Under the pieces are notes generated by a model. It ran no database searches. It worked only from the letters and a program-made list of their open reading frames with translations, and had not been told where the DNA came from. Made by a program: the position numbers and the translations under genes. From Octopus bimaculoides (taxonomy: Eukaryota): a stretch of 57,902 nucleotides of DNA. The stretch spans positions 70,447,888-70,505,789 of the forward strand of contig NC_068989.1 of assembly GCF_001194135.2 (NCBI RefSeq). The letters run 5' to 3'. Shown here piece after piece: positions 9,401-35,300 of the stretch. How positions within the stretch are numbered: position 1 is the first letter of the stretch; every line of letters begins with the position of its first letter.

Positions 9401-12400
9401 TATAATCATAGAGAAACTGAAAGATATGAAATGTCTGTTTATGTGTGTATGTGTGTGTATTTTTAGCGGGATTTTTGCATTTAGCAGGAGTTGGTTTGTG
9501 TTTTATCCCTCGATCAATGGCCAGACAAGTGAAAAGGAAAGGCGACCTTTTGAAGTGGGCGTCAAATGAAGAGACATGGACACTATTATGACTAAACTTC
9601 TTTTGAAGTTGTGGTGAGAGGAGAGAATTGATGAGCGTGCGTAGGTCTGTCTGTATGTGAGTGTGTTTGTTTGATGGGGTGTGCGCGACAGAGAGTAATG
9701 TTGATGGTGAATGTGTATATGAGAGAGAGAGAGAGAGATAACTGAAATTTATCATTCAGTTTATTTATTTATTAATATGTATATATGTATGAATGGCTTC
9801 AGTGACATACTGACATGCATGCATGCAGTTTGTTTTAATCGATTTTCTCTGTAAATATGGGGACTAGGAAAAAAATAGAAAGCGCGTTCCAATCTATGCA
9901 CCTGTCTCCATATGTGTGCCATTTGTCACGTGAATCCACTCAGCTGTTTGGCCGTGAACCTCAAGACAAGAAAGAATACAATAAGAAAGATATGTATGTA
10001 TGTATTTTTAAGAAGACACTTGGTCAAGGTGCCATTCTGTGGGACTGAAACCATAACTAACTGGTTAAGAAGCAAGCTTCTTAATCACACAACTTCCTTA
10101 TAAATAGTCAGTTAAACTGAAGTGGATACTTGCAAATACCTGGTAATTATGGAATCATGTATGTCTTGTTAAAATAGAAATATCAAATTCTAAAACAGAT
10201 TAAAAACTTTGATTTAAACATGAAATAAAAATGGCTTTGCTTATCTTTTAGGTGTGTCCGGTGTACACAGGTCCTGTCAGTATTACCAAATTATACAAAC
10301 TGTACTTGTCCACGTTCAAATAAGGTAATGTATGACAAGCATTTTCACTGATTTTTGTTTTCTTAAATTCATCATCATTATTGCTTTAACATCCATCATT
10401 ATGCTTGCATGGATTGGATGGAAGTTGTTCAGATAGATCTTTTTAATGGCTGGATGCTGTTCCTGTCACCAACCCTCATCTCTGTTTCCAAGCAAGGTAG
10501 GAAATACTTTCATGGATGGTTGGGAACAAAGGACACTGCTTGCATGACACTGATACTTGCTTGCAACTATCATGTGATGTCAAGGCAAGGAGGCAGTAAC
10601 ACACACACACACATACATTCATATATGTATACATGCATACACATACATACATACATGCAATTTGAAGGCACATGGCTCAATGATTAGAGCATTGGGCTCA
10701 CAATCACGAGGTAGCGCATTCGACTCCTGGACTGGACTGTGTGTTGTGCTCTTGAGCAAGACACTTTATTTCACATTGCTCCAATTCACTCAGCTGTAGA
10801 AGGGAGTTGCGACATCACCGGTGCCAATCTGTATCAGCCTTTGCCTTTCCCTTGGATAACATCAATGGTGTGGAGAGGGGAGGTATGCATGGATTGCTGG
10901 TTTGCAAGTGTAACTGCTGACCAAAAGGGGTCTTTACCCTTTACCCTCTCTATATATTTTAAATATTTAGCTGAAGAAGGGCAGTGAGTTGGCAGAATCT
11001 TTAGCATGCTGGGCAAAATGCTTACTGGCATTTCATCCCTCTTTGCATTCTGGGTTCAAATTCTGCCGAGGTCATTTTTGCTTTTCATCTTTTCGGGTCA
11101 ATAAAATAAGTACTAGTTGAGCACTGAGATTCATGTAATCAGCTTATCCAATTCCTCTAAACTTACTGGCCTTGTGCCAAAATTTGAAACTAATATTCTA
11201 CTGATGTTTTGTTTTTTTCTTCAGGTTGGAGATTTTTGTTTCCAAAAAAAAAGTGATATCATAGCAAGGCCATCTTACTACATACGATTAAGTGTAAGAG
11301 ATATCTTCATTTATTTATTGAATTAATTATTTATTTCATTTTAATTCCTCCAATTAACAGCATCTAGTTTTGCAATAAAGAAGTAAGAGAGAATAAAAAA
11401 GAAGAAAAACAGGCCCAATAGAGAGAGAAAGAGGAAAAAGGCCCAAAAGAAAGAGTAAAAATAAATTCAAATTTTCCATTCCACACAGCAATTTATAAAT
11501 ATTCCATAAGCTCTCTTCTTGATATCTTTTTAACTTCAGGATTGTCTCTTGCATGTGCTAAAATAATTTAGCTAATATTAATCAATGGTTAATATTCTTT
11601 TTTTCTTTACCACATAATTATTACTTGTTAGATTTTATTTTAATACTCTATTTGTATTATAAATACATAAATACTAACTGAATTATTTTTTTTTGTGCAG
11701 TTGACATCTTTGAGTTATTTATTCTTTAAACATTTCCTTGTCAATCAGTAAATCCTATACATTTACTTAGTGGTTCTCCCATCACTGCTTCAGTAAACAG
11801 GTGAAGTCTATACTTTACTGATGAGGTCATAATAAGACTGAAGGTTTTTTTAGAGTTGCATCCCATACTGGCTGAAATAAACATATTATTACTCAGTGGC
11901 AGTCTCTGTATCCTGTTTAACATGGGTGTATTATAAGAGTGCCATAATACTACAGAATTTGTCCTGAGAAAATCTCTTGTGTAGACTCTACTGTATATAA
12001 GCACCTATCCCTCTGTTTGCTTCTCTCTCTCTCTTTGGCTAAGTAAGACTTGATTTTAAGCCATTGGGTGTCAGCCCAATCATGAATTTAGTTTAATGGT
12101 AGTATATATATAAGTTTCATTTGATGGAAAAAACATAGAAAATATATATGGAGTTGGAGACTTAATCATGAAGAACCGATTTAATTTTTCTATCCTGTTA
12201 ATGAGCTAAACTTGATTATTTCTGCTAATCAATAGTGAAATTAATGTATTCTCAAAAACATTTAATTATTATTGTTCAATATCAATTTAATTAGAGACTG
12301 TCTTTACATTTACCAATTTTTTATTTTTCTTCCAGAGTGATGATTTGGTGGAATCCCATCTTCTTAGACAGAACCTCATCATTTCATACGGAATGTGTCA

Positions 12401-13222
12401 TGTTTGTATATATATTCCTTTATTCTTTTACTTGTTTCACTCATTTTAACTGTGGCCATGCTGGAGCACCACCTTGAAGGTTTTTTTTAGCCGAATGAAT
12501 CGCTCCACCCACCAGTACTTATTTCCTTTTAAAGTCTGGTACTTGTTCTATCAGTCTTCTTTTGCCAAACTGCTAAATTATGGGGACATAAACACAGCAA
12601 CACCTGTTGTCAAGTGGTGATGGAGGAACAAACACAGACACAAAGACACACACACACGACACGATGGGCTTCTTTCAGTTTCCATCTTCCAAATCCACTC
12701 ACAAGGCTTTGATTGGCCTGAGGCTATTGTAGAAGGCACTTACCCCAAGTGTCACACAGTGGGACTGAACCTGGAACCATGTGGTTGGGAAGCAAGCTTC
12801 TTACCACACAGCCACACCTGTGCCTATATATATATATTTTTATTTTTACATTTTAAAAAGTAATGGTGCACATGAAGTTAAAGAAAAAAAATTTTCTTGT
12901 GACATTTGTAGATGTTAATATTGTAGTATCATTATTTTGTTATTGTGGTGTTGTATGCATTTTGCCTGACAATGTCATGTGATCTAACTCCATGATCACA
13001 TGATTAAGTCTTCTATTCTTTTATTTGTTTCAGTCATTTGACTGCTGTCATGCTGGAGCACCATCTTCAGTTGAACAAATTGATCTCAGGACTTATTCTT
13101 AGTATGCCTAGTACTTATTCTATCGGTCTCTTTTACTGAACCACTAAGTTACGGGTACGTAAAAACACCAACATCGGTTGTCAAGCAATAGCGGGGGAAC
13201 AAACAGACACACAAACACATAC

Positions 13223-13290
<68 letters not shown>

Positions 13291-15690
13291 TTAGGGCTTC
13301 TTTCAGTTTCCGTCTACCAAATCCACTCACAAGACTTTGGTCAGCCTGAGGCTATAGTAGAAGACACTTACCCAAGGTGCCATGCAGTGGGACTGAACCC
13401 GGAACCATATGGTCGGTAAACAAGCTACTTACGACACAGCCACTTCTGCACCTATAGCCATGTTTACAAATTTCTTCCTTTATGATATGTCTTACATGCA
13501 ATTACAGATTTCTTTGGTTATTCAGTTACTTAAACCCAGTGGGAGTAAGAGGTAGCTCATAATTACATTTTTGCTTTGATAGACACTTTACTGTGAGATT
13601 ACATTAACACTTAACCCAACCTATTTATCAATTGTGATACGCAAGGACATATTTCCCAGTTGTCCATGTATCATATATGATATACATTCCCAATTTTTTT
13701 CAACCGCAAAAGTAACTTGGGACTTATGAGAGGAAAGCTTTATATTGCTCAGAATGTATGAAACAAGGACAAACTAAATCTGAAAGCAAGCATTGATGTT
13801 TAGGGCAGACTTATGAAAATGCTTTGGACAGGCAAAAGGGTTAATGAACTTGAATAAGGCCCTGTTTTCAGAAAAACAAAACCAATCTAATTGGTGGTAA
13901 TAATTTTCTGTAATGAATGACGTAACAAATATATTTGGGTTATTGAATTACGAATTTTTGTTCTGTATTAGTGTAGAAGTTATTATAAGTGGGTGGAATC
14001 TTAGGTGAGTGTCTTCTACTATAGCCTTGTGCTGCCTTGTGAGTGGATTTGGTTAAGGGAAACTGAAAGAAACCTGTCATATATATGTAAAAAAAAAAAA
14101 AAAGACCCCCCCCCCTTTCGTCATGAATGATAATGGGATTGCACCTAGAAAGATCCCCGCCAAGGCACAAGTCCAGCCAAGGTTGTTTATGGAAGACCAG
14201 CAGTCACCCATGCATACCAGCCTCCCTTCTCCACACCACTGATGTTATCCAAGGAAAAGGCAAAGGCCGAGACAGCTTGGAAGCAGTGATAGTGCAACTC
14301 ATTTCTATAGCTGAGTGAACTGGAGCAACATGAAATATAGTGTTTTGTTCAAAGGACACAACACAGCCCAGTCCAGCAATCAAACTCACTACCTCATGAT
14401 TGTGAGCCCAACCACTGAGCCATGTGCCTTCATATATGTGTGTGTTGTTATCTAGATATCACATGATGGTTGTAAACGAGCATCACTGTCATTCAAGCAA
14501 GGTTGTTCAATTCCAGTCCTCTGTCAAAAACATGGACCATAGGGAAATATTACCATACTCAGATACAGGTGAGGATTGGCAACAAGAAGAGTATCTGGCC
14601 ATAGAAAATCTTCAACAAATTCTGTCTGACCCATACATGCATGGAAAAAGTTTACATCTGTTTATCATCAACATCATTAATGATGATGAATAGATGTAAA
14701 ACTAAACCCACCATATTAATAATGTAGATTTTGACCTTCTGACTTGTTATTATCCTCTTTGTCATGATTTTTTTTTACTGTACTCAATGTCTTTTATTGT
14801 ATAGCAGAGCAGAGCCACTTAATGTGGATTGTCTATGAGTTATAGAAGATATAAATATTTATCTGTCTTAACCATAACCATCACTCAAACTGACAGTAGT
14901 AATATGATTGACAGCTGCATGCTAAGCATATTGTTGTTAATAATGACCATTCATAAACATTTACAAAAAAAAAAAAAAGCTGAAACAGGTGTATGTGTGT
15001 GTGTATGGGCAAATCGAAAATAAAAATAAAAGCAAAAGTCAAAAGGATGTACACAGTGAATGTATAAGGTTGACACTCAGTTTAAGATGGCGAAAAGACG
15101 GGGTGTGTAACTTTCTGAGCATGGCTTTTTGTCAATAGGAGGAGAAAGAAAAACTCTGGAGAGATGGAAAAAAAGTTCAAGAAAAGCACGTTACATGGCT
15201 CAAGTGACTGGAAGCGGAGACAGAAAAAGTGGGGTTTTTTTAAAGGCAAGAAGTGCGAAAATGATGTGTGTAGTATCTGTGTGCATGTGTGTTTGTGTTT
15301 GTGTGGTACTGCAGACAGGTTAGCAGCATTAGTTATGTAGTTGTGATTTTGTTATATGAGTTCATGAGGATCAAGGCACATTAACTTGTAGGATGCCAGA
15401 AATGGCTACGTACGATAACATAGAGCTCATATTGAAATAAACAACTTGGAATACATCAAATGTTGGTAGGATACCATAGACATGCGAAGTGATGTTAACA
15501 CTTTGGGTATACATTATCACTCCGAGTGAAATGATGAGAGGTTCTAATGAAGGATTTATTTAAACAATTACCTGAGGAGGCACATTTTATATTTTGGATG
15601 TATGGTAATGATTACACATCACCTTACCAATCTACTAAATGTGTAAAAATGTGTTGAAACAATTGTAGAGATTTTAAGTAAAGAATGTCG

Positions 15691-15753
<63 letters not shown>

Positions 15754-16108
15754 TTATTCTTTTACTTGTTTCAGTCATTTGACTGCAGTCATGTTGGAGC
15801 ACCACCTTGAGTGGTTTTAGTTGATCAAATCAACCCCAGGACTTATTTTTTAAGCCAACACACCAACATTGGTTGTCAAGCAGTGACTGGTGGGATAAAC
15901 ACAGACACAAAAGACACACACACATAGATATATACATATATATATATATATGATGGGTGTTTTTCAGTTTCCATCTACCAAATCCACTCATGGGGCTTTG
16001 GTCAGCCTGAAGCTACAGTAGAAGACACTTACCCAAGGTGCCACTCAGTAGGACTGAACCCAAAACCATGTGGTTGGAAAGCAAGCTTCTTACCTCTCAG
16101 CCACACCT

Positions 16109-16164
<56 letters not shown>

Positions 16165-17041
16165 ATTTCATAATTGGTAGAAGTTACAAAGTAACTTAAA
16201 GGCTGAGAGCTTCATGCATGATATTTTGTGATAGTTAATGAGTGTCACCATTAAAACAAATATTGTCATTCATTTCCAATCTTCCATGCAAACATCTCTA
16301 GTCTTGAGGAAATATTACTTTGCTTGAAAACAAATGAAGGTAAAAGTAATCATGTGAGGGAGGGGTATCTGGCTGCACAAAAATCAGTTTCAGTCTTATT
16401 CTATCAGATACAAGCATGCATGTAAGAGAGGACATTAAAATGTTGATGATGGTGATATACATGACAAGCTTCCACACAGTTTCCACCTCTCTTCCAAATT
16501 TCATTCACAAGGCAATTCGAAACCGATGAAGACACTTGCCCAAGCTACTGTTAAATGGGCTTGAAACCAGAACCTTGTGGTAGTGAAGTAGACCTTTAAA
16601 CCACACAGCTTATAGCTTCATCTATATTAGTAACTTTTGTGCATGTATCACTTACTGAAGAATCTCAGAAGTATTATGGTTTCTTGACATATTTTTAACA
16701 ATCTAGTTATTTTCTTCATAATTTCTCTTTATTTATAGGCCAGTTATTATAACAGCACAGCTTGTCAGTCCCTGGGCAACATGTGTGTTCTGCTTTATGC
16801 CACCCACTTGGTGCGTAAATTAAGCCCACAAATCCAGGCGTGCACTCTGTTTCGAAACTTGTCAAAGCTGGCAAAACCACCTGTTAATGAAGAATATGAG
16901 GTCAGTGATTGGTAAGTATTTTTAATTTTGGAAGTCATTACCAGAATGCTCAGCATTTGGCAGCATGAAAAGATTAGTTTGATTGAGGTAAGAGACAATT
17001 AGTTAAGGAGGTGAAAGTTCATGTTCTGTAACTGAGTCTAC

Positions 17042-17075
<34 letters not shown>

Positions 17076-20000
17076 GAACTTGTGGAAGAGGGAGACCCAG
17101 GAAGACATGGGACAAAGTACTAAAGGCTGATCTCAAGATACCAAGTTTTACAAAGAAGATGACTAGGGGCCAAGATATCTAGTGCCTTGCTGTATTTGAG
17201 AAGCCCTGTTCACCTCAGCAGAATTGGTACCAGTGCTGGTGCCACATAAACAGCATCCAACATGCTCTGTAAAACGGTTTGTGTTAGGAAGGGCAGCCAG
17301 CCATAGAAACCCTGCCAAAACAGACAATGGAGCCTGGTGCTGCACCCAACTTTACTAGCTATCCAACCCACCATGCAAGCATAGAAAACAGATTCTAAAT
17401 GATGCTGATGATATATATATATATATATAAATACAGTATATGTACAGGTACAGGCATGGCTGTGTGGTTAAGATGTGTGTTTCCTAAACAAATAGTTTTG
17501 AGTTCAATACCTCTACATGGCACTTTGAGTAAATGTCTTCTGTTATAGCCCTGATAGACAGAAACTGAAAGATCCCTAGTGTGTGTGTGTATCTATATGT
17601 ACACACACACATAGACCTTTGTGTGTGTTTGTCCTTGACATTATGTCATAGTTGTAAACAAGTGTCACCATCATTTGAGTGGTGCCCTTTGTTTCCAATA
17701 TGTGTAATCATGCCCAGGCATAGGAAAATATAACCTTGCTTAGTGACGTTTGATAAACTTAGAGAGCTAAAAGAAAAATCTCTAAGAGGGGAAAAAGAAA
17801 ATCTAAGAGATAAAAAAAAAAAAATCAAAGATAAAAACAAATCAGTCCTGGTAGGATTTGAGCTCAGAACATGAAACACAATTTGGAATTTTTTTTGTTT
17901 CTTAATCTATACTATAAACTCTTAATACATTGACTTTCTTTGATTAAACTCTTTAGTATTCAGATTACTCTGTCAAATGTAGTACTTATTTATTCACATC
18001 GTTTTTAATTAATTATGTATTATCTTGTAGCTTTGAGATTTGAGTAATATGATTGCATATTTTTAGGATAATATTGTATGGTAGGTGTGAGAGGCCAGAT
18101 CTGGCTGGTTTGAACATAAAACAAGTAGAATATTTTGGCCTGATATGGCTGGTTTAAATGCCGAAGGGCTAAGATCTCACCCTAAGTAACTGAATTTTAA
18201 CTTCTGTTATTACAGGCCATATAACATGCCTTGGCTGTATTATACCTCATTGACGGTGAATGTACTGAACAGTCCTAGTTTACCAGTTGAGTTTACTGTG
18301 AAGCCACCTATGCAGCTCAAGTTCATTGTTGTAATGTATTCATTTGAGGGTCAATATCTGGGGATGAAGAGTGTCAACGGTGGTGTTTTGCAGCTATGTA
18401 AAATGAATGACGTGAGGATGGATGCAATTTGGACTTTTGGAACAACATATTCAAGCAAGGTAGGAAAAAATGTTTTGGTATTCAGCAATGAATACTAGCA
18501 ATGAAAATAAAACCTAACAAAGTTCATCGATGTTTTCACCTTCCTAATATAAACTAAAAATTGAGTATTGAGGGTTGTAAAGCAAAGCTAAGCTGCTACA
18601 CTTTTCATTTAAGACAATTATTCATTTTAGCTAATTATGTTGCAAATACTCTTTAAAAGAATGTATGTGAACATCACACAGTTTTATTTAGTATTTTCGT
18701 TGGATCTGAAATCCCTTATGTATCAAATCAATATGTTCATTTTTATATGAAGAATTTTGGCATTTGATAAGTGGCTGTGATAATTTTGTACTTGGTCAGC
18801 CTTTTCTTATAAAGCTGAGCATTTTAATCTTTTTATTTCAGTGTTACTTGAAGATAAGGGATCTCTTTGACAACCAGACTTATCCCTTGATTTTCTATGA
18901 TCTTTGTATCCTTTGCTGAATTCTGAAAATCTTTCAGTAGTTTCTCAATGTTTTAAAATTCTTGCATTTAAATGGATTTGTGGAGGAGCTTCTACATAGC
19001 TACCGAGCCTATTCAATATAGCAAATGTAACGCTAACTTTTTTGATACCAAACTGCCAGATACTGCTCTTGGGTCTACAATGCAAACTTCCTGTTTTAAA
19101 GTGAACTAAATTAAAGCTTTTCATTGAAATTTCAAGTTAATTTATGTTAAGAAAATTGCCCCCAAAGCTAATTTAATCATGACAAAAATTACTAAATTTT
19201 TTATTATTTTCAAAACTGATTGAAACAAAGGCAGTATATTTCAACAAAAATATGGTTACAAAAGGGTTAATATTGCATTAAATCTTGGGTTAAATCTAGA
19301 TATAATTGTTACTTTGAATATCATCATCGTCATCATCATTATTATATTTCTTTTTCACAAGGATAATCCACATTGATAATTTTAGTAAACAGCTACAAAT
19401 TTTAACATCTGATATTTGCTTTATTGGTTAATATTAGAACTAACAAAATATCTTTGACTGGAATATTTCTCTTTTGCAATGATAGCCATAGTGAAATATA
19501 GTAGATACACTGAGAAGGCCTTTAATTTAGTAGCTTGGTATATTGAGGTATATCATTTAAAGTGTTATTGATTCAATTGTTTTATTGTTAGCATATATCA
19601 GCTGAACCTAAATTGTTAGTGCCACTGCTTCCTCTAATCCTTTTAAAAATAAGCTCTGACACAAAATTATGAAAGATAATCTACAATAATAAAAATGAAA
19701 TTCTGTCAGTCCGTCTGAGACCTCTGTATTCAATCTACGTTTGCTCTACGTAGACATATTATACCTTTTTGGAATTGGGATGATCCTTTGATTGAAAATC
19801 AGCTCATCATTTAGTTCTTGAACATCCAGCGTTGGAATCTGATTTAAAAGCATTTAGGTTGATATTTCTAGCAGGTAAAACTTGGCTGATTCACACCATC
19901 TTGGTTGGTGTTTGTCAGATGACGTCAGAGATTAAGTGGGAGATAAATGACATTCACTTCGTTAATTTTACATTGAGATAAGAACTTTGGGACAAATTGA

Positions 20001-23000
20001 TCAAAAGCTGGAATTCAACTTGGGATTGGAACAATAGAGTGATTGCATTACAGAATTAATTCTCACCCATCCTTAACCTCTGATCAGACACCACTTATAG
20101 ATGTATTATAGCCATGCTATGTAGCCCTCCTTAGTTTTGGGCCACAGGCCTGATTAGTCCTCCGCAGGAGCTAGCTTAAAAGTTTGCATGGAGTGCGGCT
20201 TATAAGCTAGTATTGGTATAAGATTGAAAACAGAATTCAACATTTCTTACAAAGTTTAGTTAGTTATAATGTGGAAGACATATATTAGTCATTTAGAAAC
20301 ATGCAAAAACTGTTAACTTCACTTAAACATTAATAAATGGTGTCAAATTTTTCATGCAGTGGAACCATGTGAGTGATCAGGTTACAGTTGGTGTGATGAA
20401 AATTTTGACACCAAATAATGAAATTTTATGTGAAGTTAAGTTTTTGTGTGTCTTCCATGCTGTAATTGTTTTAGTTCAACATATGGTATCAGGTCAAATC
20501 ACTTGCCAGACAAGTAAAGACCCCTTTCGTTCATAAATGACCATGGGATTGCATCTAGAAAGTTCCCCTCTGAGGTTCAAGTTTGAACAAGGCTGTTTAT
20601 GGAAGACCAGCAGTTGTCCATGCATACTGGCCTCCCCTCTCCATGTCACTGATGTTATCCAAGGGAAAGGCAAAGGCTGTTGCAGCTTGGTACCAGTGAC
20701 ATCGCAACTCATTTCTACAGCTCAGTGAACTGGAGCAATGTGGAATAAAGTATCTTGCTCAAGGACGTAACACACAGTTCGGTCTGGGAATTGAGCTCAC
20801 TATCTCATGATTGTGAGCCCAACAGTGTAACCAATGAGTTATGTGCCTTTACAGACAAGTACATCTCTGAAATGTAGTCATAAATTTGTAGTTTAATGAC
20901 TTTAAAAAATAAGTGGATGGAGTTGATCTTGGACTGTCTTTTTTGCAAATTGTAATAGTTAAGTCTTGGCAGCAGTGGTAGTTGAGACTGCAGTCAATCT
21001 TCTGATCAAACCAAAGAAACTATGTTTATGTAGGGTTTTTGTTTTTCTCCCATTGTTGATAGTCTGTTGGTTACAATTCCTGACAGAAATGTCATTGCTG
21101 TGTTGGTGATAGGGCAAGATTTGAAAACAGTATGCATAGATCCAGAACAGATACTACAAAAGTTTGATGCTCTACCAATCTTCCCTGGACTAGTACTTCT
21201 TTTTACCGATCACCCCAAAAGAATTAAAGGCAACACTGACCTTGGTGGCATTTGAACTCAGTGCACAGAGAGCTGGAACATAGGTTGCTTGGCATTCTAT
21301 CCAGCATTTTAACAACGTTACTAATTCTTTGTCCTAATTAGACATTACATTTAGTTTAGTAACTACTTATTGTTCAGCTGAAAGAATTTCTTATCACCTT
21401 CTTACTTCTCAGCACACCGGCAATGTAATTTCTCAAGGTGACACATTGGCAGAATTGGTTGAATATCGGACAAAATGCCTTGCTGTATTGATTCCACCTC
21501 CTTGGAAATCCATGATGAACTAGTTGAGTGGTAGACTTAATCCATTGCCTAGTTTAACACCATTACCTTGCACCTTGTGTACCTTTACTAAAAGTCCAGT
21601 CTGTTGCAAGCATTCTGGCCAGGCACCCGTTTTGAGGATACTGTCCTTTCTTCCTTCCTCCCTCCTATCAGTCTCAGAGGCCCTGTAATAAGTCATGGAT
21701 ACTGGGTTCCCTTTTCACTGAAAATTTTCTTTTTTAAAATTGAAAGACACAGCATTTTGGAACTACTGGTATATTTTAACCTTGTGACTGTCACAACAAG
21801 AAAATTTCAAATGAAAAGAAATTGTGTTAATATATTTATTGCCTTGTTCACTGATCATTATAGCTAACAACATATTGCCATCTCCTGAAGTCATAAATAT
21901 TTGTAAGCCTCATAGTGACATTGTCAGTCTTTATTTTAATGTTCTTCTTTATGCATTAGTTATTGGTAATAGCTGTCATATATATAGTGATTTACTGTTT
22001 GTATCCTAGTTTTAAATAGGTACGCCATGTTCTTGCAGATAATAAAAATTAGGTTCTGGTGGCAAGAAGTGCTTCCAGTTGTAAAACACTGCTTCAAAAA
22101 TGCAACTTCAGTTAGTGTCATTATAGGGATGGGGTGGGGGGAATGGAAAAGACTGTCATGGTGCCTACAAGACTAATCTGGGCTTGAGCAGGAGAAATGG
22201 TCTTGTCCTTTTGATACTAATCCACCTTAGACTGCTCCTGGTTCTATGATGCAACCTTCATGTTTAAAATAATCTTAAATCAGACCTTCCATCAAAGTTT
22301 TATGTTAATTCATGCCTCAAACACCAGTTTAATAACACTGAAGTTATTTTATTAAATTCTTCAGGCATGGCTGATGAAGCTTGCTTCCCAACCACGTGGT
22401 TCTGGGCTCAGTCCCACTGCATGGTACCTTGGGCAAATGTCTTCTACTATAGCCTTGTGACCAAAGCCTTGTGAGTGGATTTGGTAGACGGAAACTGAAA
22501 GAAGCTCATTGTATATATATATATATATATATATAATAGAAATATGTTTCAAAAAGAAAATAGAAACTACATGTGGAAAAGATACGGGGGAAAGTAAGAA
22601 GAAGAAAGTGAAAATGCACGTTGGATATCAAAAAAAATAAAGGCTTTTTTATGAAAAGTAGCGATAAATATATACAATTAAATGAACTGAGGTAGAATTA
22701 AGACGAATAAAAGTCATTATTTTGAATTGTTACTACTTACCTCCCTTACACATAATCTTTTTACCCAGGGACTAGTAGACCCGACACCGTTTAGAAATCG
22801 GTGCTCATTCAAAGCCAGTGAACAGCATTTGACGATACTAGTATGACTATGAATCTCATTAACAATTCAAAATAATGACTTTTATTCCTCTTAATTCCAT
22901 CTCAGTTCATCTAATTGTATATATTTATTGTTACTTTTCTTAAAGAAGCCTTTATTTTTTTGATATCCAATGTGCATTTTTGCTTTTATTCTTCTTACTT

Positions 23001-23003
23001 TCC

Positions 23004-23045
<42 letters not shown>

Positions 23046-26000
23046 GTGTGTCTTTGTGTCTGTATTTGTCCTTCTATCACTGCTTGACAATTGGTGCTGG
23101 TGTGCTTACATCTCCATAACTTAGCAGTTTGGAAAAGACACCGATAGAATAAGTACTAGGATTTAAAAATAAGTCTTGGGGTTGATTTGTTCAACTAAAA
23201 CCCTTCAAGGCGGTGCTCCACCATGGACACAGTCAAATGACTGAAACAAGTAAAAGATAAAAGGTTTTTTTCAAAATTAATTGAAGTAAAGGCAGTGTAT
23301 TTCAACAGAAATATGTTAATGGTTTAAAGTGTTTATTTTATGTTAGTGTTATGAAAGCAATCTACTTTCTGTTGGACAAGTGGAGCCAGAGTTCACATCT
23401 TCTCATCTTCTTTGCCCGCTTATTCCTGGGAAAGTCGTGGACGCAGAGTCCTCAAGTACACTTTCCATTGGGTCCTCTCAGAAGCAACCATTTCCAATTA
23501 ATCTACCAGATCACCAAGCGAGACCAACCAAGCCCATGGATGTTATCCAACTATTTCACATTGCTCCAGTCTACTCTGCTGTAGAAATGAGTTTAGCCTG
23601 GAGAGGGACGGGCTCTGCCAGGCTTTCTTGCCCTAGATACGCTGCATGGCTGCAATGCCCCAATGATCCCCAAGGGCTTAAGAGACTTGTCAATTGTCAA
23701 GTAACCTTGGAGAAGTTTTGCAGTTCATTTGTTGGTCAGAGAATTATTGCTGTACTCGAAATATAGGTTACTTGTTGTCTGTGTGTACATCCGAACTACA
23801 AGGCTAAATGTTAAAATATTTGTCTTAAGTTTAAAACTATCCAATAAATTTTCTTCTAACCAAATTGCCATTAATTACCTGTCAGTCTACCTTTTAAACC
23901 AGTGTCAATGACCAAAATGACCTTGCTTTTCTTTTATACTACTAATTCCTAACACCTGTGAAAATTCTATTTTTCCCCCAATCTTCATAATCCTGTCTCT
24001 ATGTCTTATTGGATTCTTTTGTAAATGTTTGTGTATATTTAAATATTTCTAATATAAACTCAATTGAATATTAAGTGCTATACAGCAAAGCTAAGTTGCT
24101 GACAACTCTTCCATTTTAGCCACTATTTATTTCCTAATACTGTTTAAAAAAAAAATGTACGAACAGGTGCAGGCATGGCTGTGTGATAAGAAGCTTTTTT
24201 CCCAACCATATGGTTCTGGGTTCAGTCTCACTGTATGATATCTTGGGCAAGTGTCTTCTGTGATAGCCTCAGGCCAACCAAAGCCTTATGAGTGGATTTG
24301 GTAGACAGAAACTGAAAGAAGTCCATCGTATAAATACAGTTGTGGCCAAAAGTTTGGAACATTGTTTAAAAAATTAAATTTGTTAAACCCCAAGTACAAT
24401 TCGATTCAAATATATACAGTGTAGAGATATACTCACCTAATAACTAATCCAGTGGTTCAATTATAGGATATTGAACCACTAGATCAGTTATTAGGTAAGT
24501 ATATCTCTCATCATCATCATCATCATTTAATGTCGATTTTCCATACTGGCATGGGTTGGATGGTTTGACTGAGGTCTGGAAAGTCAGCAACTGCACCAGG
24601 CTCCGATCTGATCTGGCAATGTTTCTACAGCCGGATGCCCTTCCTAATGCCAACCAATCCGAGAGTGTAATAGGTACTTTTTTTACATGCTGCTGGCACA
24701 GGAGCCAGTCAGGTGGCTCTGGCATCGATCACGTTCGGATAGTACTTTTTATGTGCCACCAGCACGGGAGCCAGTCAGGTGACCCTGGCATCAATCACTC
24801 ACACACACACACACACACTATTCTCACAAGGAAAAATTTGACAATGACTAGCATTTCAGCTCTGTTGCCTTCATTGAACTCTAGTCGTAGCTGTCAACCT
24901 TTCCCTTGTAAAAATAAATGTTACTCTGAAGAGGAGGCATTTGGATTGAATTGTACTTAGGCATAGCAATTTTAATTTTTGGAAAAATGTTCCAGACTTT
25001 TGACCACGACTAATATATCTGTGTGTGTGTGTGTGTGTGCGTGTTTGCCCCCCCCCCCCANNNNNNNNNNNNNNNNNNNNNNNNNNNNNNNNNNNNNNNN
25101 NNNNAACTGGTTGACAAGTGGTGTTGGTGTGTTTATGTCCCTGTAGTTTAGTGGTTTGGCAAAAGAGGCTGATAGATTAACTACCAGGCTTCAAAAAAAA
25201 ATACCGGAATTGATTCATTTAATTAAAAATTCTTAAAGGTGGTGCCCCAGCATGGCCGTAGTCTAATGACTGAAACAAGTAAAAGATAAAAGATTGTATA
25301 ATCTCATTCCCTATCTTCCATGAATCTGAAGTCTTAGTGTATGGAGGCCTTAATATGAATTCGATATGTTTTATGTTTATTTTTTTTTTACTTGTTTCAG
25401 TCATTGAACTGTGGCCATGCTAGGGCACAGTCTTGAAAGGTACTTATTTGACCCCAGCTCTCTCTTTTTTTTTAAAGTTTGGTAGTTATTCTGTTATTTT
25501 ATTTTGCCAAACTGCTAAGTTATTGGGATATAAACAATCCAACACCAGGTTGTCAAACAGTGGTGGGGAACAAACACAACACAGAAAGGGGTCATGTTTT
25601 CATCCTTTTATTTTTTGTCTCTAAGTCATAACAAAAATCAGTTTGGTGGGTTGGGTGGGGGTGATGGAATTAATCGTCACTCAAGAGTATAAGGGAGCTT
25701 AGAGAAAGATTGACCTGGGGAGAAGAAATATTGGACATTTTTCCTGCTCATGAATCTTTCCAACTTGTAATTGATAGAAAGCCATTATTCTTGTATGTTA
25801 ATACTGTATTTGTTTGTCTGTTTTTTTTTTTTTAATTTGGATATTTCCTTAATTATTTGATGAGATTTGCGGTACACTCACAATAGTGAGGACCGGCTGT
25901 ATGCCGTTCCCATTGTTATTGAAAACCATGTTGGAGAAAATAACGTCAGAGTCAACAAAGGTCTGTTTTGATAGATGCTTCATCATCACCATCATCATTT

Positions 26001-29000
26001 AGCACCTGTTTTCCATGCTGGCATGAGTTAGACGATTTGACTGGAGTTAGTAAGCCAGAGAGCTGTATCAGGCTCCAGTCTGTTTTGGCTTGACTTCTAT
26101 GGCTGGATGCCCTTCCTAATGCCAACCACTTCACAGAGTGTAGTGGGTGCCTTTTATGTATCATCAACACAGGTCCCTCTTAGGTGGCACCAGCATGGGT
26201 ACCTTTTGCATGTCATGGGCATGGGTGCCTTTTATGTGTCACCAGCATGGGTGCCTTTTATGTGTCACTAAAACAGGTGCTTTTTATATATCACTGGCAT
26301 GGGTGTCTTTTATGTATCATCAGCACAAATGCTTTTTATGTGTCACCAGCACAGGTGCCTTTTATGTGTCACAGGAAAATGGGTGTCTTTTACATGTCAC
26401 CGGCACAGGTACCATATATATGTCACCAACACTGGGCATGACTACAATATCACTTAGCTTGACATGTCTTCTCAAGCACAGCAAATCACCAAACCATAAG
26501 TATCATCATCATCATAGTCACCATTATCATTAGAATTACCAGCATCATAATCATCACCATTCTTCTCCTCCTCCAATGTCTGACTTCCTTGCTAGCACGG
26601 GTAGGTAGAGGCTGGATCTGGCTGGTTTGAACAGGAATAATATTGCAGCTGGATATGACTGGTTTTGTTACCAACCCAGCCGAAACCTGCTCTGGCTCTG
26701 TAGTACAAATGTCTTGTTTTCATAAGTTTTGAATTAAAATCTTCCACCAAACCTTAGTCACAACTTATATTCCTAACACTAGCTTAATGATAACTAAGTT
26801 ATTTTACTAAATTCTTTGTTATATTTAAAATAATTGAAAGAAACACAGCATCTCAAAATAAATACAGTAACGAAAGGGTTAAATGCTAACGGGTTAATGA
26901 GCCTAAAGACTTGTCGCAGACTTAAGAACTGTTGAGTAAGGAAACTATAACTTGTTAGAGCAGTTATAATGCTAAGATATCAGAGCAGTCATTGTTAATA
27001 TTATATGACCGAAAGGTGACAAGCTGGCACCGGATAAAATGCCGAACAAAATACTTGGCAGCATTTCTTCTGATGTTATGTTTTCAGTTCAAATACTGCT
27101 GGTGTCAACTTTGCCTTTTGTCCTTTTGGGGTTGATAAAATAAGTCCCAGTTGAACACTGAGGTTGATGTAACTGTCTGGTCCCACCCCTGAAATTGCTG
27201 GCCTTGAGTTGAAAGTTGAAACCAATATTATATGACCAAGGCGTAACAAGGCAATCCTTTCTAATACTAATTAGACCAAGACGTAACAAAATATTCATTG
27301 TTAACATTAATTATATAAACCAAGGCATAATAGAGCCATCGTTGTTCATATCTGTTATATGACCAGACATAACAAAACAATCATTGTTGGGGCCAAGACA
27401 TAACAAAGTAATCATTGTTAATGTCACTGAAAAAAGCGGTGAGCTGGCAGAATTGTTACCATACTGGGCAAAATGCTTGGTGGCATTTTGTCCGTCTTTA
27501 CGTTCTGAGTTCAAATTCCGCTGAGGGCAACTTTGCCTTTCATCCTTTTGGGGTCAATAAAATAAGTACTATTTGAGGACTGGGGTTGATATAATTGATT
27601 TATCCCCCTCTCCACAAATTCTAGACCTTGTGCTTATAGCGGAAAGGATTATCAATGTCACTGAAGATTGGCTCTTTGGATACATTTTTGCAAAATATCT
27701 AGCAATTTGTCAATTCCTTCTTAGCCATTCTTTAGTATGCCATTTTGTTCCCAAGAATAGTATTATATAAGAAAATTGTCTTGTGTGATAGGAATTTGTA
27801 ATAAGAAAGAAAAGACAATTTATGAATGAGTTCTTTGGTGGGAGTTTGGCAAGATGAAGCCTTGTGGATTGGTGCTATATTGCAGTCCTTGTTCAATATA
27901 TGCCTATATCGAACTGTTAATGGTAACACTGTGTAACATGATTTTTGTCCTTCGGTAGCAACTGTTAGTTTTTATTTACTTTCGCCTAGAAAGTATGAAA
28001 AATAGCTACTATTTCCTTTAAAGTTTGCTTTTGTTACATTTATTCAAGCCCCAAAGAATCGCTTTGAAAACATGGCTGTGATGCTCCCCAAATACTCTTG
28101 CTCATGATCAGAGATGCACATACTGTCTGCCACTAAGGGAAATGGCTCAACTGGTTAAGGTCAAGCAACTGACAAACAAATCGGTGGTATTGAGCAGAAT
28201 ATTTGCTATAACAAGATTTCTGCTTCAGCAACTCAGCGCTGAATCTGTCTGAAATGTAATGGAAAATAGAGTCAGTTTCAAAACATTGATGTCCAGGTCA
28301 CAAAAGCAAAGTTTGAAGGGAATAATAGTCATTTCCTTTGATTTCTAGATAGAAGCAAATAGGCAATAACACTTACAGACCAAAGATAAAAATATAAATT
28401 TTGTTACACAGTGTAATCATTATATTTTTATTTTGTATTTTCAGAACAAGTAGACAAATGGGTTTTAACCAGACGGTTTTTCCTTGTTGACAATGTGTCT
28501 ACTCGGAAATTGGTGAAACCAGGAAATGGTGTGTATTATATATAATTATGTTTTTTGTTTTGTAAAGTGTTTTATGTGGAGATTGAGTGAATTATTAGTT
28601 ATCATCATCATCATTGTTTTAATGCTTGCATGGGTCAGATGGCTGCATGTTGTGGCAGAGATTCCTATGACCAGATGCCTCTCTTGTTTTCAAGTGTGGG
28701 AATAATCTCACAGTCTATCAAACAACAAACAACCTGGACATGCTTTTGCAGTGGACTGCAAGCAAGGGTAACTGACTATATGAACAGTAGTGCTTTTGGC
28801 TACGATCAGCAAACACACATGAAGATGAAAGAAATATGGATGGCCTTTCTCTCTCTGTCACGTGTATGTGTGTGTTTACATCATAAGAATTTAGAAACTT
28901 TGAGAGACATGAAGTAAATTATTTTTAATGGCAGTACTTGAGTTCCATCGTAAAAAATAATTTACTTATATAGTCATCATCATTTAAAGTCTGTCTCCTA

Positions 29001-29317: not shown

Positions 29318-32300
29318 AGCTTCTTTCAACTTCCGTCTATCAAATCCACTCACAAGGCTTTAGTCATCCCAAGATACTTACCCCAGGTGGCAAGCTGAAG
29401 GACTGAACCCAACACCACATCATTAGGAAGTGAATTTCTTATGCATAAAGCCATGCCTGGACTTATTCTCTCTGAAAATTCATTAAAATTATCTTTCTCT
29501 CACTTACTCTCTTATTACATAACTACAGCAGCCTCACCATCACCCCATTTTCTATCATTCACTTTCAGCACATTCTCTTTGCACAGAAGTAGCTAGCTAG
29601 TGTTGCTATTCACTTCTCTGTTAAGAGTAAGTCTACAGCTTAATATTAGAGCCATTACATACCAAAAATAACTTACAACTTTACTTCTTCCATACAATAA
29701 GTCAGATTCCTGAATTGTTGTATCACTCACTTCTTGCAGACAGCATAACCAAAACAATATATCCCTTTTGTACTCGTTTCAATCACTGGACTGTGGCATT
29801 GTTGGTATGTTGCATTGAAATGGGTTTTTTTTGTCAAACAAATCCAACCCCCACCCCCGCCGTACTTATTTCTTTAAAAGTCTGATACTTATTCTGCTGG
29901 TCTCTTTTGCTGAACTGCTTAGTATCATCACCACCATTGTTTCTAACATCTCTTTCTAATGTCCAATTTTATTCATGCTTGCATGGGTTGGATGGAATTT
30001 GTTGCAGAGGGTGGATGCTTTTCCTGTCACCAATGCTCACCTCTGTCCAAGTAAGGTAACATTTCCCCATAACCAGATATGTTTACACAGAATATTGGAA
30101 ACAAAGGACACTGCTTGCATGATGGTGACACTCGTTTACAGCTATCATGTGATATCAAGATATGGGGACAGTAGCACATATACACACATAGATATTCAAT
30201 ATTCATATCTATATCACAGGCTTTCAATTTCAGTCTAGTAAATCCAGCCTGGGGCTGTAGTAGAAGACATTAGCCCAAGGTGCCATGCAGTGGGATTGAA
30301 CCTGGAACCATGTGGTTAGGAAGCAAACTTCTCACCACAGAGCTTTGATTTTAGTGAACTGGATATCGTTAGTACAGTCTCATCTGGGACCTTATAGTTT
30401 CATGTGGTTGGGAAACACTCCCCACACAGCTTTGATTTTAATGAACTGACACCATTTGAGCGTGGCCATTGCCAGTACCGCCTGACTGGCCCTCGTGCCG
30501 GTGGCACGTAAAAGCACCCACTATACTCTCGGAGTGGTTGGCGTTAGGAAGGGCATCGAGCTGTAGAAACTCTGCCAGNNNNNNNNNNTTAGGAAGGGCA
30601 TCGAGCTGTAGAAACTCTGCCAGATCAGATTGGAGCCTGGTGCAGCCATCTGGCTTACCAGTCCTCAGTCAAACCGTCCAACCCATGCCAGCATGGAAAG
30701 CAGACGTTAAACAATGATGACAATGATGATGGTGTTCAGTCTTGTCTGGGATTGCACTGTATATTATCTTCCAATACTGGTTAGTTGTGTTGTTAGGGGC
30801 TTGTGGCTGTTGGAACTTGTTGATTTTATCTTTTTGTCTAAAATACTTGATTCTAGATTCAAATGTTATTGTTTCTCTTACAGTTTATGTCAATAACTAT
30901 GTACGATTTGCTCAGTACATGAAGTTTGTCTTCCGACTGCAACCCACAAAAAATGGCCTCATTTATCCTCCATATTTGAAAATTTTGTATGGCGAAAAGT
31001 CTTGGGCTTCTGCAGTTGCACTCAAAAATGTCCCGGTTTGTATTATTGAGTTATCTTTTATTTATTTACCTTTTATCTTTACTTGTTTCAGCCATAGGTC
31101 TGTGGCCATGCTGGGGCATCACCTTGAAAAGTTTAAGTTGAGTAGTTTGACCACCCCCAGTATTTTTTCTTTTTTGGTTTTAATCAGAGACTTAGTCTCT
31201 TGGTCTCTTTTGCTGAATTGCTAAGTTACAGGGAGGTAAATAAACCAGCACTGGTTATCAGGCAGTTGGTGGTGGTGGTGTGTGTGGGACAAACTCGAAC
31301 ACTAAAGACAGAAACATACACACTTATATCGATAAAACAAAAAAGAACAATCGTGAAATTCACTGCAGAAGAAATAAGCAACACAAAGGCGCTTCTTAGC
31401 AAAGAAGGAGATAACTTACATCTTCACATTCCAAAACATATCATAGAAAACACAGAAAAAAGAACAATGAACAATAATATATAAAAGGGGTACCTTCTAA
31501 TTTTTACATTATCCTGAATCATTTCTCATTTTATAGGTGCAGACATAACTGTGTGGCTAAGAAGCTTNNNNNNNNNNTGTGTGTGTGTGTGTGTGTGTGT
31601 GTACCTTTGCTTTGACATCATGTGATGGTTGTAAATGAACATCACTGTTATACAAACAGTGTTGTTTGTTCCCAGACTTCAATGAAAAACACGTCTGGCT
31701 GTGGGGCAATATTAGCTTAGAAACAGGTGAGGAATGGTGATAGGAAATGGCATCAAGCCATCAAAAATCTGCCCCCCTCTCAAATTCCATCTGACCCATG
31801 CAAGCATGGAAAAGTGGATGTTAAATGATGATGATGATGATATTTGGTCTATCATATTCTTTCTGTTATTACATCAAGTAATATGATAATGTGTGTTTAT
31901 TTTGGATGGTTACATAGAAAGAATATTCTAGCAAAGAGTATTTTATTTGTCTCCTTTTTCAGATAATATTCAAATCTGAATATCTACAAGATGAAACCGG
32001 TATTGAAAACAGCATCAATATAGCTTTTGGAACATTGAGTGTCTTTGCAATAATCTTCGCTGGTTTTAATACATGGGCATGGTCAAAGAGATCGGCACGC
32101 ATTTCTATAGACTTTGCCACCTTGGTTAACCTGTTTCTTAACATGTGTGCTTCACTTGGTAGTGTCTTTTTCTTTACAATACTTGGCATTGGTATATATT
32201 TTCTTCTCTTCTTCAAAGTAAGTAAAACACATTTTTCTTTCCTTTTTTTGTGATGCATGAGAGATTTATTGTCAGTGGTGAGGAAATATTGGATCATCCC

Positions 32301-35300
32301 ATAAATAATGTGGTTTTTTTATACTTTTGTTTTTCAAAATTAAGATAAAGTTCTTTTTTAATCTAAAATATACTCTTCTTCATTTTCTACAATTCTCTTC
32401 CATCTATCTGGTAGACTTGCAAGGCCCCTCTTTCAAAATTCACTTGTCTGTGACAAAAAATACTCCTCCAGTATTGTTCTGACCTCACCTACAGAATTCA
32501 TATTTTTCCTGTCCAAACAATTTTGAAGACTGTGGAATAAATGATAATCAGATGGGGCAATGTCTGGCGAATATGGTGGGCTGGGGCATCATTTCCCATT
32601 CAAACTGCTTCAGCCTTTGGAATGTCATCCTTGCTGTATGTGGCTGAGCATTATCCTGATGGAAGAACACCTTTTGTCTTGAAACCAAAGATGGTTGTTT
32701 TTCTTCTGCACTGAGTTAAGCTGCTGAAGCTGCTCACAGTAGATCTTCTTTGTTATCATTTGGTTAGGGTTTAAAAGTTCAAAGTGGACTAAACCTTTTA
32801 TATCCCACCAAACAACACCTTATGTGGGTGAAGACCTTCTTTAGCCTGGGGTGCCAATGTTTCTCCTTTCCCTACCCATTGTCTTCGGCACTTGACATTT
32901 TTACAAAGAACCCATTTCTTGTCACCAGTCACTATGTGGTCCAAAACAGGTTCATTCGTGAGATGTGACAGCAAAGAAGAGCACACATTCACTCTCTGCA
33001 CGCGATTAGACTCAGAAAGTTTGTGAGGAACCCATTGACTNNNNNNNNNNTCTGCACGCGATTAGACTCAGAAAGTTTGTGAGGAACCCATTGACTCAAT
33101 TTGCTGACTTTTCTGATGGCACACAGGTGTTGATGAATGGTTGAATGACCAAATGTTAACTATGTAATTACATAACTGATGAGATTTTTATTTTACCTCA
33201 ACAGCTATTGAGTAAAGTTAAATTATGAATATGTGGAATTAATGCTTTCCTATTTTTTGTTTGAAATCCTAAGATAAGGAATAGAGAGAAAAATACATTT
33301 TTTGTTGCATAATTTCTTTCAGAATCTTACCAGAACATGACAGAACAATTTTTTTTTTTCTCTTTCAGCAACAGAACACAGTGATAATTCTACCAATGTC
33401 TAGTCCTTTACTGAAAGAAATGTTTTCTTCATTTATCGTAGTCACGTTTTGCTTGAAGTTTTTCCACATGATTCAACTACTTGTTCGGCAGTGCACTGTG
33501 GACATGTTTTTCATTGACTGGGAAAAACCAAAAAGTAACCAGAAAGATTCCTCTGTGTCTGCTTGGAGAGTTTTATTTGTTGCCAATGAATGGGTCGAAA
33601 TTCAAACTTCCCGACGTATTAACATTGTATTTCAGCTTTTAGCATTGTTGTTCCTGCTCGTAGTTGTCGGCTTCGAAAATTTGGCATTCAATGATGCCAG
33701 TTCTAGCTTCACAGCCCCTGACACTAGCAACGTGGTTCCACAAAACCAGGTTTTCAGGTTTACTCTGTCGACCACCTTGTATCTTTTGGTTGGTAAGTTA
33801 ACAAAATACAATGACTTCATTCTTTTTAACCTGCATTCATGCATTCAGAGAGAGAAAAACAGCAAAAGAAAGACGCACACATGAGGGAGTGCTGAAAAGT
33901 TCCTGGCTTTAAGGGTATCATGAAAGGCCTGGTTGGAGGCCCGACTTTCTGAGTTCTTTTACAGGGTTTAGAAAACAGAGGGACCAGCTATCCAAATTGA
34001 CAGTACCTTAGTAGAGAAAGCAATTAAGGGTATGAAGACAGGGAAAACCCCCGGCCCATCAGGAATCTCCACAGAGATGCTTAAAATATCTGGCGGTGTC
34101 GGCTATAGTCTAGTCACCTGTATAGTCAATCAGGTGATACATGAAGGAGTCATCCTAATGGCTGTTGTAGCAGCACCATAGTCGACTGCTACAAAGGTAA
34201 AGGTGATGCATTAGATATGAATAATTACAGAGGTATCAAGTTGTTGGATCAGGTAATGAAAGTCACAGAGAGGGTCATAGCCCAACTAATTAGGGAGAGA
34301 GTTAGTTTAGATGAGATGCAGTTTGGATTTGTGCCAGGGAAAAGCACCACTGATGCTATATTTCTACTAAGACAACTCCAAGAGAAATATCTAGCCAAAG
34401 ATAAACCTCTGTACCTGGCTTTCATTGACATGGAGAAAGCCTTTGACAGGGTCCCCCGATCCCTTATCTGGTGGTCAATGCGGAAACTAGAGATAGATGA
34501 GTGGTTGGTGAGAGCTGTACAAGCCATGTGCAGGAACACTACCAGGAAGGTGAGGTGGACAACAAGTACAGCAAAGAATTCAAGGTACAAGTAGAGGTTC
34601 ACCATGGATTGGTGCTCAGCCTCTGCTTGTTTGTTCATCATAGTCCTTCAGGCAATAACAGAGGAATTCGAGATAGGCTGCTCCTCTATGCTGATGACCT
34701 GTACAGGGTCATGTACAGGGATGCTGTTAGTAAGGTGAGGGTTGGCAATGAGTATAGTGAAGAATTCCGAGTAGGGGTCTGCCAAGGATCAATCCTCAGC
34801 ACCCTCTTATAGCCCTCCAGGCAATAATAGAGCAATTCAAAACAGGATGCTCCTGGGAGCTTCTCTATGCTGATGACCTTGCTCTAATAGCTGAGTCACT
34901 ATCATAACTAGAGGAGAAGTTTCAGGTGTGGAAGCATGGTCTAGAATCGAAAGGCCTTAGAGTCAATCTAGCAAAAACCAAAGTCTTAATAAGTAGGAAG
35001 GCAGACAAATCACAAATCCTTTCAGATAGATGGTCCTGCTCAATCTGTAGAAAAAGCGTAGGTAGAAACTCCATAAAATGTACCCAGTGTAAGCTATGAA
35101 CACATAAGAGGTGCAGCAATATCAAAGGCAGGCTAACTGGGAAGATAGTTTTTGTATGTGGCAAATGCTCAGGTGCTATAAACACTGAAAATGTGCAGAA
35201 AACAGCTTCTATCACATGCCAGGGGAAAAAACTAGAAGTAGTTAATAGCTTCTGTTACCTAGGTGACCAAGTCAGTAGCAGGGGTGAATGCTCTGTGAGT

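Follow-up and report, generated by a model that had tools for sequence, protein, structure and literature searches.

U12-type introns of the GT-AG subtype, as catalogued with intronIC/IAOD and in MIDB and U12DB, begin with GTATCCTT and carry a TCCTTRAY branch motif 10-15 nucleotides (nt) from the 3′ splice site; they lack a pyrimidine tract between the branch motif and the 3′ splice site, lie in a non-zero phase and are deeply conserved in position. In the model of minor splicing, the U11/U12 di-small nuclear ribonucleoprotein (di-snRNP) binds such an intron cooperatively, U6atac replaces U11 and catalysis proceeds with U5. The subject of the present analysis is intron 10 of the meckelin (TMEM67) gene of Octopus bimaculoides, contained in a stretch of 57,902 nt (contig NC_068989.1, positions 70,447,888 to 70,505,789 of the forward strand); this whole stretch is referred to as the window, and coordinates are window positions unless another genome is named. 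Intron 10 very probably represents, judging from its splice signals, a GT-AG intron of the U12 type that is removed by the minor spliceosome. It displays every sequence-level feature that defines this class, and no structural difference between it and the catalogued introns was found.

In human, the genes with U12 introns are enriched in cilium genes, and six of them code for transition-zone proteins (PMC9992838). TMEM67 is listed apart from the human minor-intron genes TCTN1, TMEM231, TMEM107 and TCTN2 (PMC13216214). These four genes of the MKS module are like octopus TMEM67 in that each is a transition-zone ciliopathy gene with a U12 intron, the retention of which leads to a premature stop. 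They are, however, different genes, and TMEM67 would depend on U12 splicing in invertebrates only.

Intron 10 extends over positions 18906-25864 of the plus strand, on which all gene features described here are located. It is a phase 1 intron with a nominal length of 6,959 nt, including a 44-N gap, and its delimitation draws on an RNA junction and on orthologues in seven other invertebrate genes. The preceding exon 10 (18842-18905, 64 nt) starts after TTTTTATTTCAG, and its last base is the first base of the Tyr394 codon. The exon ends ...TTC TAT GAT CTT T, and the intron reads GTATCCTTTGCT from 18906 onwards. The U12-type 5′ splice site GTATCCTTT, the recognition element of U11 and U6atac, occupies 18906-18914 and matches the donor pattern /[AG]TATCCTT of U12-type introns. 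It is the sole copy on both strands of the 57.9-kb window, where 0.54 copies would be expected, and it is situated exactly at the donor.

At the opposite end of the intron, the U12 branch-point motif TTCCTTAAT (25845-25853) precedes the AG of the 3′ splice site (25863-25864, RNA-verified) by 12-13 nt, as is typical of the U12 motif TCCTTRAY, which lies about 10-15 nt upstream of the 3′ site. From the branch A (25851/25852) it is 13-14 nt to the first base of exon 11. The string TTCCTTAAY has two copies in the window, against 2.0 expected, and one of them is that of the acceptor. The intron passes into exon 11 as ...TTTTTTTTTAATTTGGATATTTCCTTAATTATTTGATGAG followed by ATTTGCGGTACACT; exon 11 (25865-25960, 96 nt) starts AT TTG CGG TAC ACT and is followed by the U2-type donor GTCTGT. 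Exons 10 and 11 join in frame (T/AT, phase 1), which restores Tyr394 in the sequence FYDL-Y-LRYT. The initial annotation of this DNA had placed a U12 donor and branch site at these positions and had proposed the same join; the letters of the window agree with both, and the join is confirmed by RNA contigs and by the identity of the product to a public protein, described below.

The same annotation had stated that the acceptor has no pyrimidine tract. This stands for the 12-nt interval that separates the AG from the branch motif (TATTTGATGAG), where the pyrimidine fraction is 0.58 compared with a mean of 0.74 in 198 other meckelin introns; as in other U12 introns, no polypyrimidine tract follows the branch point on the way to the 3′ site. 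It does not stand for the sequence just upstream of the branch motif, which contains a run of 14 T (T14, 25821-25834). This run is present in O. sinensis and not in the other orthologues. Together with the GT-AG termini, a T14 run 29 nt upstream of the AG gives some ground for supposing that the motifs are U12-like while the intron, being of a minor-like or hybrid kind, is removed by the major (U2-type) spliceosome with T14 as the pyrimidine tract. Such removal is very improbable. Pairing with U1 favours A, G and T at positions +4 to +6, but the donor GTATCC carries T, C and C there, and this donor is found in 0 of the 198 other meckelin introns. The 8-nt U11 element and the close CCTTRAY are invariant across six phyla, whereas a U2 intron would have no reason to keep both, and the T run is missing from Argonauta, Haliotis, Mizuhopecten, Owenia and Glandiceps. 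On this comparison, the T14 run is probably not part of the splice signal. The constancy of the donor element and the close branch motif, while the intron bodies vary from 359 to 6,959 nt, is a signature of recognition by U11/U12 rather than by U1/U2.

The junction itself is documented by RNA contigs from four sequencing runs of three studies, in which 18905 is joined directly to 25865. These are a 666-nt contig of run X33 with the junction at contig positions 364 to 365, a 5,486-nt mRNA contig of X34 with a depth of 123, a 5,185-nt mRNA contig of X13 with a depth of 72 (71.9) and a 265-nt contig of X36. In all four, 18905 is followed by ATTTGCGGTACACTCACAATAGTGAGGACC, the start of exon 11, and the GT-AG termini at this RNA-verified junction are in line with the terminal dinucleotides of U12-type introns (GT-AG or AT-AC). 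In layouts of the full intron, joints between repeats crowded the joint tables, and the junction was taken from contig pieces and loose ends. The junction 18905/25865 had been proposed for checking against RNA, and it is the only one seen: no competing junction was observed in the RNA contigs of X33, X34, X13 and X36. In the junction-bearing contigs intron 9 (18460-18841, 382 nt) is also spliced out. This is a U2-type GT-AG intron (GTAGGA ... TTTTTATTTCAG) common to all ten species compared, with its splice joint in RNA contigs of X13, X33 and X34; exon 9 upstream of it occupies 18216-18459, and RNA contigs cover 18215-18457/9. Two low-depth contigs of X13 (8.6 and 4.3, compared with 71.9 for the mRNA contig) cross 18902-19178 into intron 10, and intron 9 is without cover. 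These contigs may be a weak hint of unspliced RNA; the length of the intron or DNA carry-over are equally possible explanations.

Several points weigh against the assignment of intron 10 to the minor spliceosome. A 3′ site of the U2 type could in principle make use of the T14 run that lies upstream of the branch motif, although this run is not conserved outside Octopus. In raw-read runs X41-X43, sampled to about 6%, five reads fall on exons 10 and 11 while the flanks of the intron have none, which is too few for an estimate of retention. None of the minor small nuclear RNAs (snRNAs) of the species was found in the Rfam scan, which covered the window only.

The assembly of the intron deserves separate consideration, as it contains a gap of N at 25061-25104, after a (GT)n/poly-C tract and before very high-copy repeats, with the nearest splice signal about 760 nt further downstream. 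DNA contigs assembled from short reads end at the microsatellite, and none of them bridges 25061-25104. It could be supposed from this unbridged gap that the 7-kb intron is a product of faulty assembly, with the gap hiding a misjoin and leaving the adjacency or frame of exons 10 and 11 uncertain. The probability of such an artefact is very close to nil. The mRNA contigs of four runs join exons 10 and 11 directly, and the gap is 760 nt away from the nearest splice signal. The chromosome-level O. sinensis locus, which is free of gaps, has the same exon order, and its intron is collinear with that of O. bimaculoides at both ends and in two internal blocks. A blastn comparison of the two introns, the orthologous one being 2,403 nt long and gap-free, produced four collinear blocks, at window positions 18906-19327, 21438-22261, 25218-25587 and 25753-25864. 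Between them, the part 19328-21437 has no O. sinensis alignment (2.1 kb here and 635 nt there), and the repeat-rich stretch 22262-25217, which includes the gap and has a contig depth of 10^5-10^6 in DNA runs, has no collinear counterpart. The gap is thus deep in the intron, in a stretch that O. sinensis lacks, so that exon continuity, frame and splice signals are unaffected and only the length of 6,959 nt is nominal.

Very high-copy repeats occupy 22355-22611, 22869-23382, 24154-24667, 25003-25053 and 25241-25308 of intron 10 and make up most of the surplus of about 4.5 kb over the O. sinensis intron. Their contig depth is 10^4-10^5 in RNA runs and 10^5-10^6 in DNA runs, and numerous chimeric joints link them with sequences elsewhere. 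The octopus intron has expanded to about 7 kb through repeat-rich sequence missing from the 2.4-kb intron of O. sinensis. No match was found in Rfam and tRNA scans of intron 10 and of the whole window, hence no hosted small nucleolar RNA or snRNA.

The host gene is meckelin (TMEM67), as the initial annotation had recognised. It is complete in the window (1824-52588), with 21 coding exons, mapped from the exons of O. sinensis, and a product of 982 amino acids. The spliced product is 100% identical to XP_014790222.1, the public meckelin of O. bimaculoides, and 93% identical to the O. sinensis protein. It matches the Pfam family PF09773 (Meckelin) with an E-value of 7.1e-237 over profile positions 2-825 of 825, and the solved human meckelin structure (PDB 7FH1) with an E-value of 1.2e-193, residues 36-982 being aligned with residues 47-995. 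The orthologues across animals likewise carry the name meckelin. A homologue search with the joined 54-residue peptide returned no match, which reflects a limit of the word index and no misannotation, since the database protein contains almost the same peptide.

For a comparison across animals, the annotated proteins of ten meckelin genes were mapped exactly to their own genomic loci, and intron positions were set on a protein alignment. The set consists of eight invertebrate genes together with those of the teleost Betta splendens and the primate Lemur catta, and it contains 206 introns, 198 of which are other than the intron at alignment column 440, the equivalent of octopus intron 10. An intron in phase 1 at this column, after FYD[LIM] and within a Tyr/Phe codon, is present in all eight invertebrates. 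In each of them it starts with GTATCCTT, which begins none of the 198 other introns, and among all 206 introns the pattern [AG]TATCCTT is found at column 440 only. In 8/8 orthologous introns, against 1/198 of the others, the motif CCTTRAY is found at a distance of 11-14 nt from the exon. The length of the intron varies among the cephalopods from the nominal 6,959 nt of O. bimaculoides to 2,403 nt in O. sinensis and 799 nt in Argonauta hians; it is 359 nt in the gastropod Haliotis asinina, 1,138 nt in the bivalve Mizuhopecten yessoensis, 751 nt in the annelid Owenia fusiformis, 467 nt in the cephalochordate Branchiostoma lanceolatum and 1,088 nt in the hemichordate Glandiceps talaboti. A plain U2 intron at this position, lacking conserved ATCC or CCTTAA-type signals, had been put forward as an outcome that would speak against the U12 assignment; none was encountered in the eight invertebrates, where these signals are conserved. 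The flanking U2-type introns (column 418 in phase 0 and column 473/474 in phase 1) are common to all ten species.

Betta splendens and Lemur catta, with 28 exons each, lack the column 440 intron. Exon 12 of these two species (c.1102-1255, 154 nt, in Betta and c.1132-1288, 157 nt, in Lemur) corresponds to octopus exons 10 and 11 (64 and 96 nt), and the octopus Tyr394 codon corresponds to Tyr398 within Lemur exon 12. The vertebrate exon encodes the same protein segment (C..FYDV/Y..VNQ) and lies between the same two U2-type introns that flank the octopus pair, but it is a single exon, from which the U12 intron has been removed exactly and without trace. The position had been ascribed to the interior of human exon 12. 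This is directly seen in the lemur and the fish; human TMEM67 has 28 exons (PMC6993522), its protein is collinear with that of the lemur, and the human exon number is inferred from Lemur and from this count (PMC6993522). The absence of the intron in a primate and a fish agrees with the listing of TMEM67 apart from the human minor-intron genes (PMC13216214).

The occurrence of the same codon, phase and signals in Lophotrochozoa and Deuterostomia points to an ancestral bilaterian intron and not to a gain in cephalopods. By its distribution, the intron is traced back to the last common ancestor of protostomes and deuterostomes. Its exact removal took place on the vertebrate line, later than the separation from cephalochordates and earlier than the divergence of teleosts and tetrapods. 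The initial annotation had weighed the loss of an ancestral U12 intron in vertebrates against a gain in cephalopods. The former is borne out by the presence of the intron in all eight invertebrate genes, amphioxus and hemichordate included, while the latter is excluded by the non-cephalopod orthologues with the same U12 intron. A wider form of the gain explanation would have the U12 intron arise at one proto-splice site either in cephalopods alone or independently in several lineages of invertebrates, with vertebrates never having possessed it. The ten species compared, which include no non-bilaterian outgroup, leave some room for this history, but its chances are very slim. Three mollusc classes and the annelid have the same codon, phase and motifs as amphioxus and the hemichordate, U12 introns are considered to be gained very rarely and to convert in one direction, from minor to major (PMC10639083), and parsimony strongly favours one origin with one loss over six or more gains. 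Among the reported fates of minor introns, clean deletion is the commoner one (PMC10639083).

As a point against an ancestral intron with a single loss, the vertebrate part of the sample is one teleost and one primate, beside molluscs, an annelid, amphioxus and a hemichordate, so that the times of origin and loss are only bracketed. Of the explanations set against an ancestral U12 intron, three were rejected on RNA, motif and orthologue evidence: an artefact of assembly, splicing of the U2 type and a gain specific to cephalopods.

The structures of the 21-exon and 28-exon genes diverge well beyond the U12 intron, as other differences in intron position demonstrate. About ten positions (e.g., columns 367, 396, 520, 611, 674, 754, 801 and 828) are occupied in amphioxus, the hemichordate, the fish and the lemur and are missing in molluscs and, at the exact positions, in the annelid. 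A phase 1 intron at column 797 is found in molluscs and the annelid only. The meckelin gene of Owenia fusiformis is compact except for one 36-kb intron (30074-66226 of that locus), where a nested gene or a problem of annotation or assembly is possible.

The remaining 19 introns of the octopus gene look like U2-type introns: 17 are GT-AG introns with GTRAGT-like donors and pyrimidine-rich acceptors, and two are GC-AG. The GC-AG introns are intron 1 (2023-4086, ATG/GCAAGT) and intron 4 (8793-10251, CAG/GCATGT). Both are GC-AG in O. sinensis as well, and intron 1 also in Argonauta; other phyla have GT there. Seven further assembly gaps (2390-2640, 7350-7800, 30579-30588, 31568-31577, 33041-33050, 39943-40890 and 56024-56530) lie in introns 1, 3, 12, 13, 14 and 18 or 3′ of the gene; no exon is broken by them and the frame of 982 amino acids is complete. 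A dispersed repeat of about 200 nt, with 70-88% identity among copies, was found at 1439-1608, 10971-11200, 27047-27700, 37504-37696, 45393-47477 and 51733-51950. Its copies are located mainly in meckelin introns, with one upstream of exon 1 and a tandem array at 45.4-47.5 kb. They translate as ...YFIDPKRMKGKV..., which causes spurious tblastn matches to the meckelin motif FFIDWERPKGKV. Somewhere within 9000-18499 or 26201-28900 there is sequence that was found mostly in human sequencing runs, possibly a simple repeat or contamination.

Applied to the octopus gene, the model of minor splicing would have the U11/U12 di-snRNP recognise two signals of intron 10 jointly, GTATCCTTT as the rigid 5′ element and TTCCTTAAT as the branch motif. 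U4atac/U6atac.U5 would then catalyse removal of the intron, and the exons would join so as to restore Tyr394 (T/AT). If intron 10 is retained, translation runs as FYDL-CILC-stop, with an in-frame TGA at 18917-18919, four codons into the intron, and meckelin is truncated before all of its transmembrane segments. An unspliced intron 10 would therefore be expected to yield no functional meckelin, hence the dependence on the minor spliceosome predicted for animals that carry the intron. The initial annotation had further suggested that the minor spliceosome would limit the rate of meckelin output; this may be so, and the observation that bears on it is the weak hint of unspliced RNA in run X13. 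On the vertebrate line, deletion of the intron fused two small exons into the present exon 12.

A function of the intron in regulation is a further conjecture. It is conceivable, though doubtful, that the intron was kept for more than 0.5 billion years as a regulatory valve that ties the supply of meckelin, and with it the assembly of the transition zone, to the activity of the minor spliceosome. Also unlikely is the extension of this idea, in which the valve would have been part of an MKS module that was ancestrally larger in its U12 dependence, and jawed vertebrates, through the deletion at their base, would have released TMEM67 from this control. Neutral persistence has been argued for most minor introns (PMC10639083). 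The present data show conservation and loss and nothing on regulation, and neutral persistence fits them equally well as a valve.

Among the papers of the library searched, none connects TMEM67 or meckelin with a U12 intron in any species. A pan-eukaryotic survey of minor introns, in which molluscs are described as relatively rich in such introns, included Octopus sinensis (PMC10639083), and the O. sinensis copy may accordingly be present already, unremarked, in genome-wide minor-intron sets. The concern that gene predictors would misannotate exons 10 and 11 did not materialise, as the NCBI models of O. bimaculoides, O. sinensis, O. vulgaris and Argonauta use the junction (FYDLYLRY); current annotation pipelines thus already process the meckelin U12 intron correctly.

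The finding leaves the understanding of U12 introns as it was and does not introduce a new kind of feature. Its significance is for the gene and its lineages: it presents a clean, datable case of precise deletion of a U12 intron, and TMEM67 would join the transition-zone genes that depend on the minor spliceosome, outside vertebrates only. This implies that a failure of minor splicing would lead to the loss of meckelin in amphioxus, oysters, annelids and cephalopods, but not in fish or mammals.

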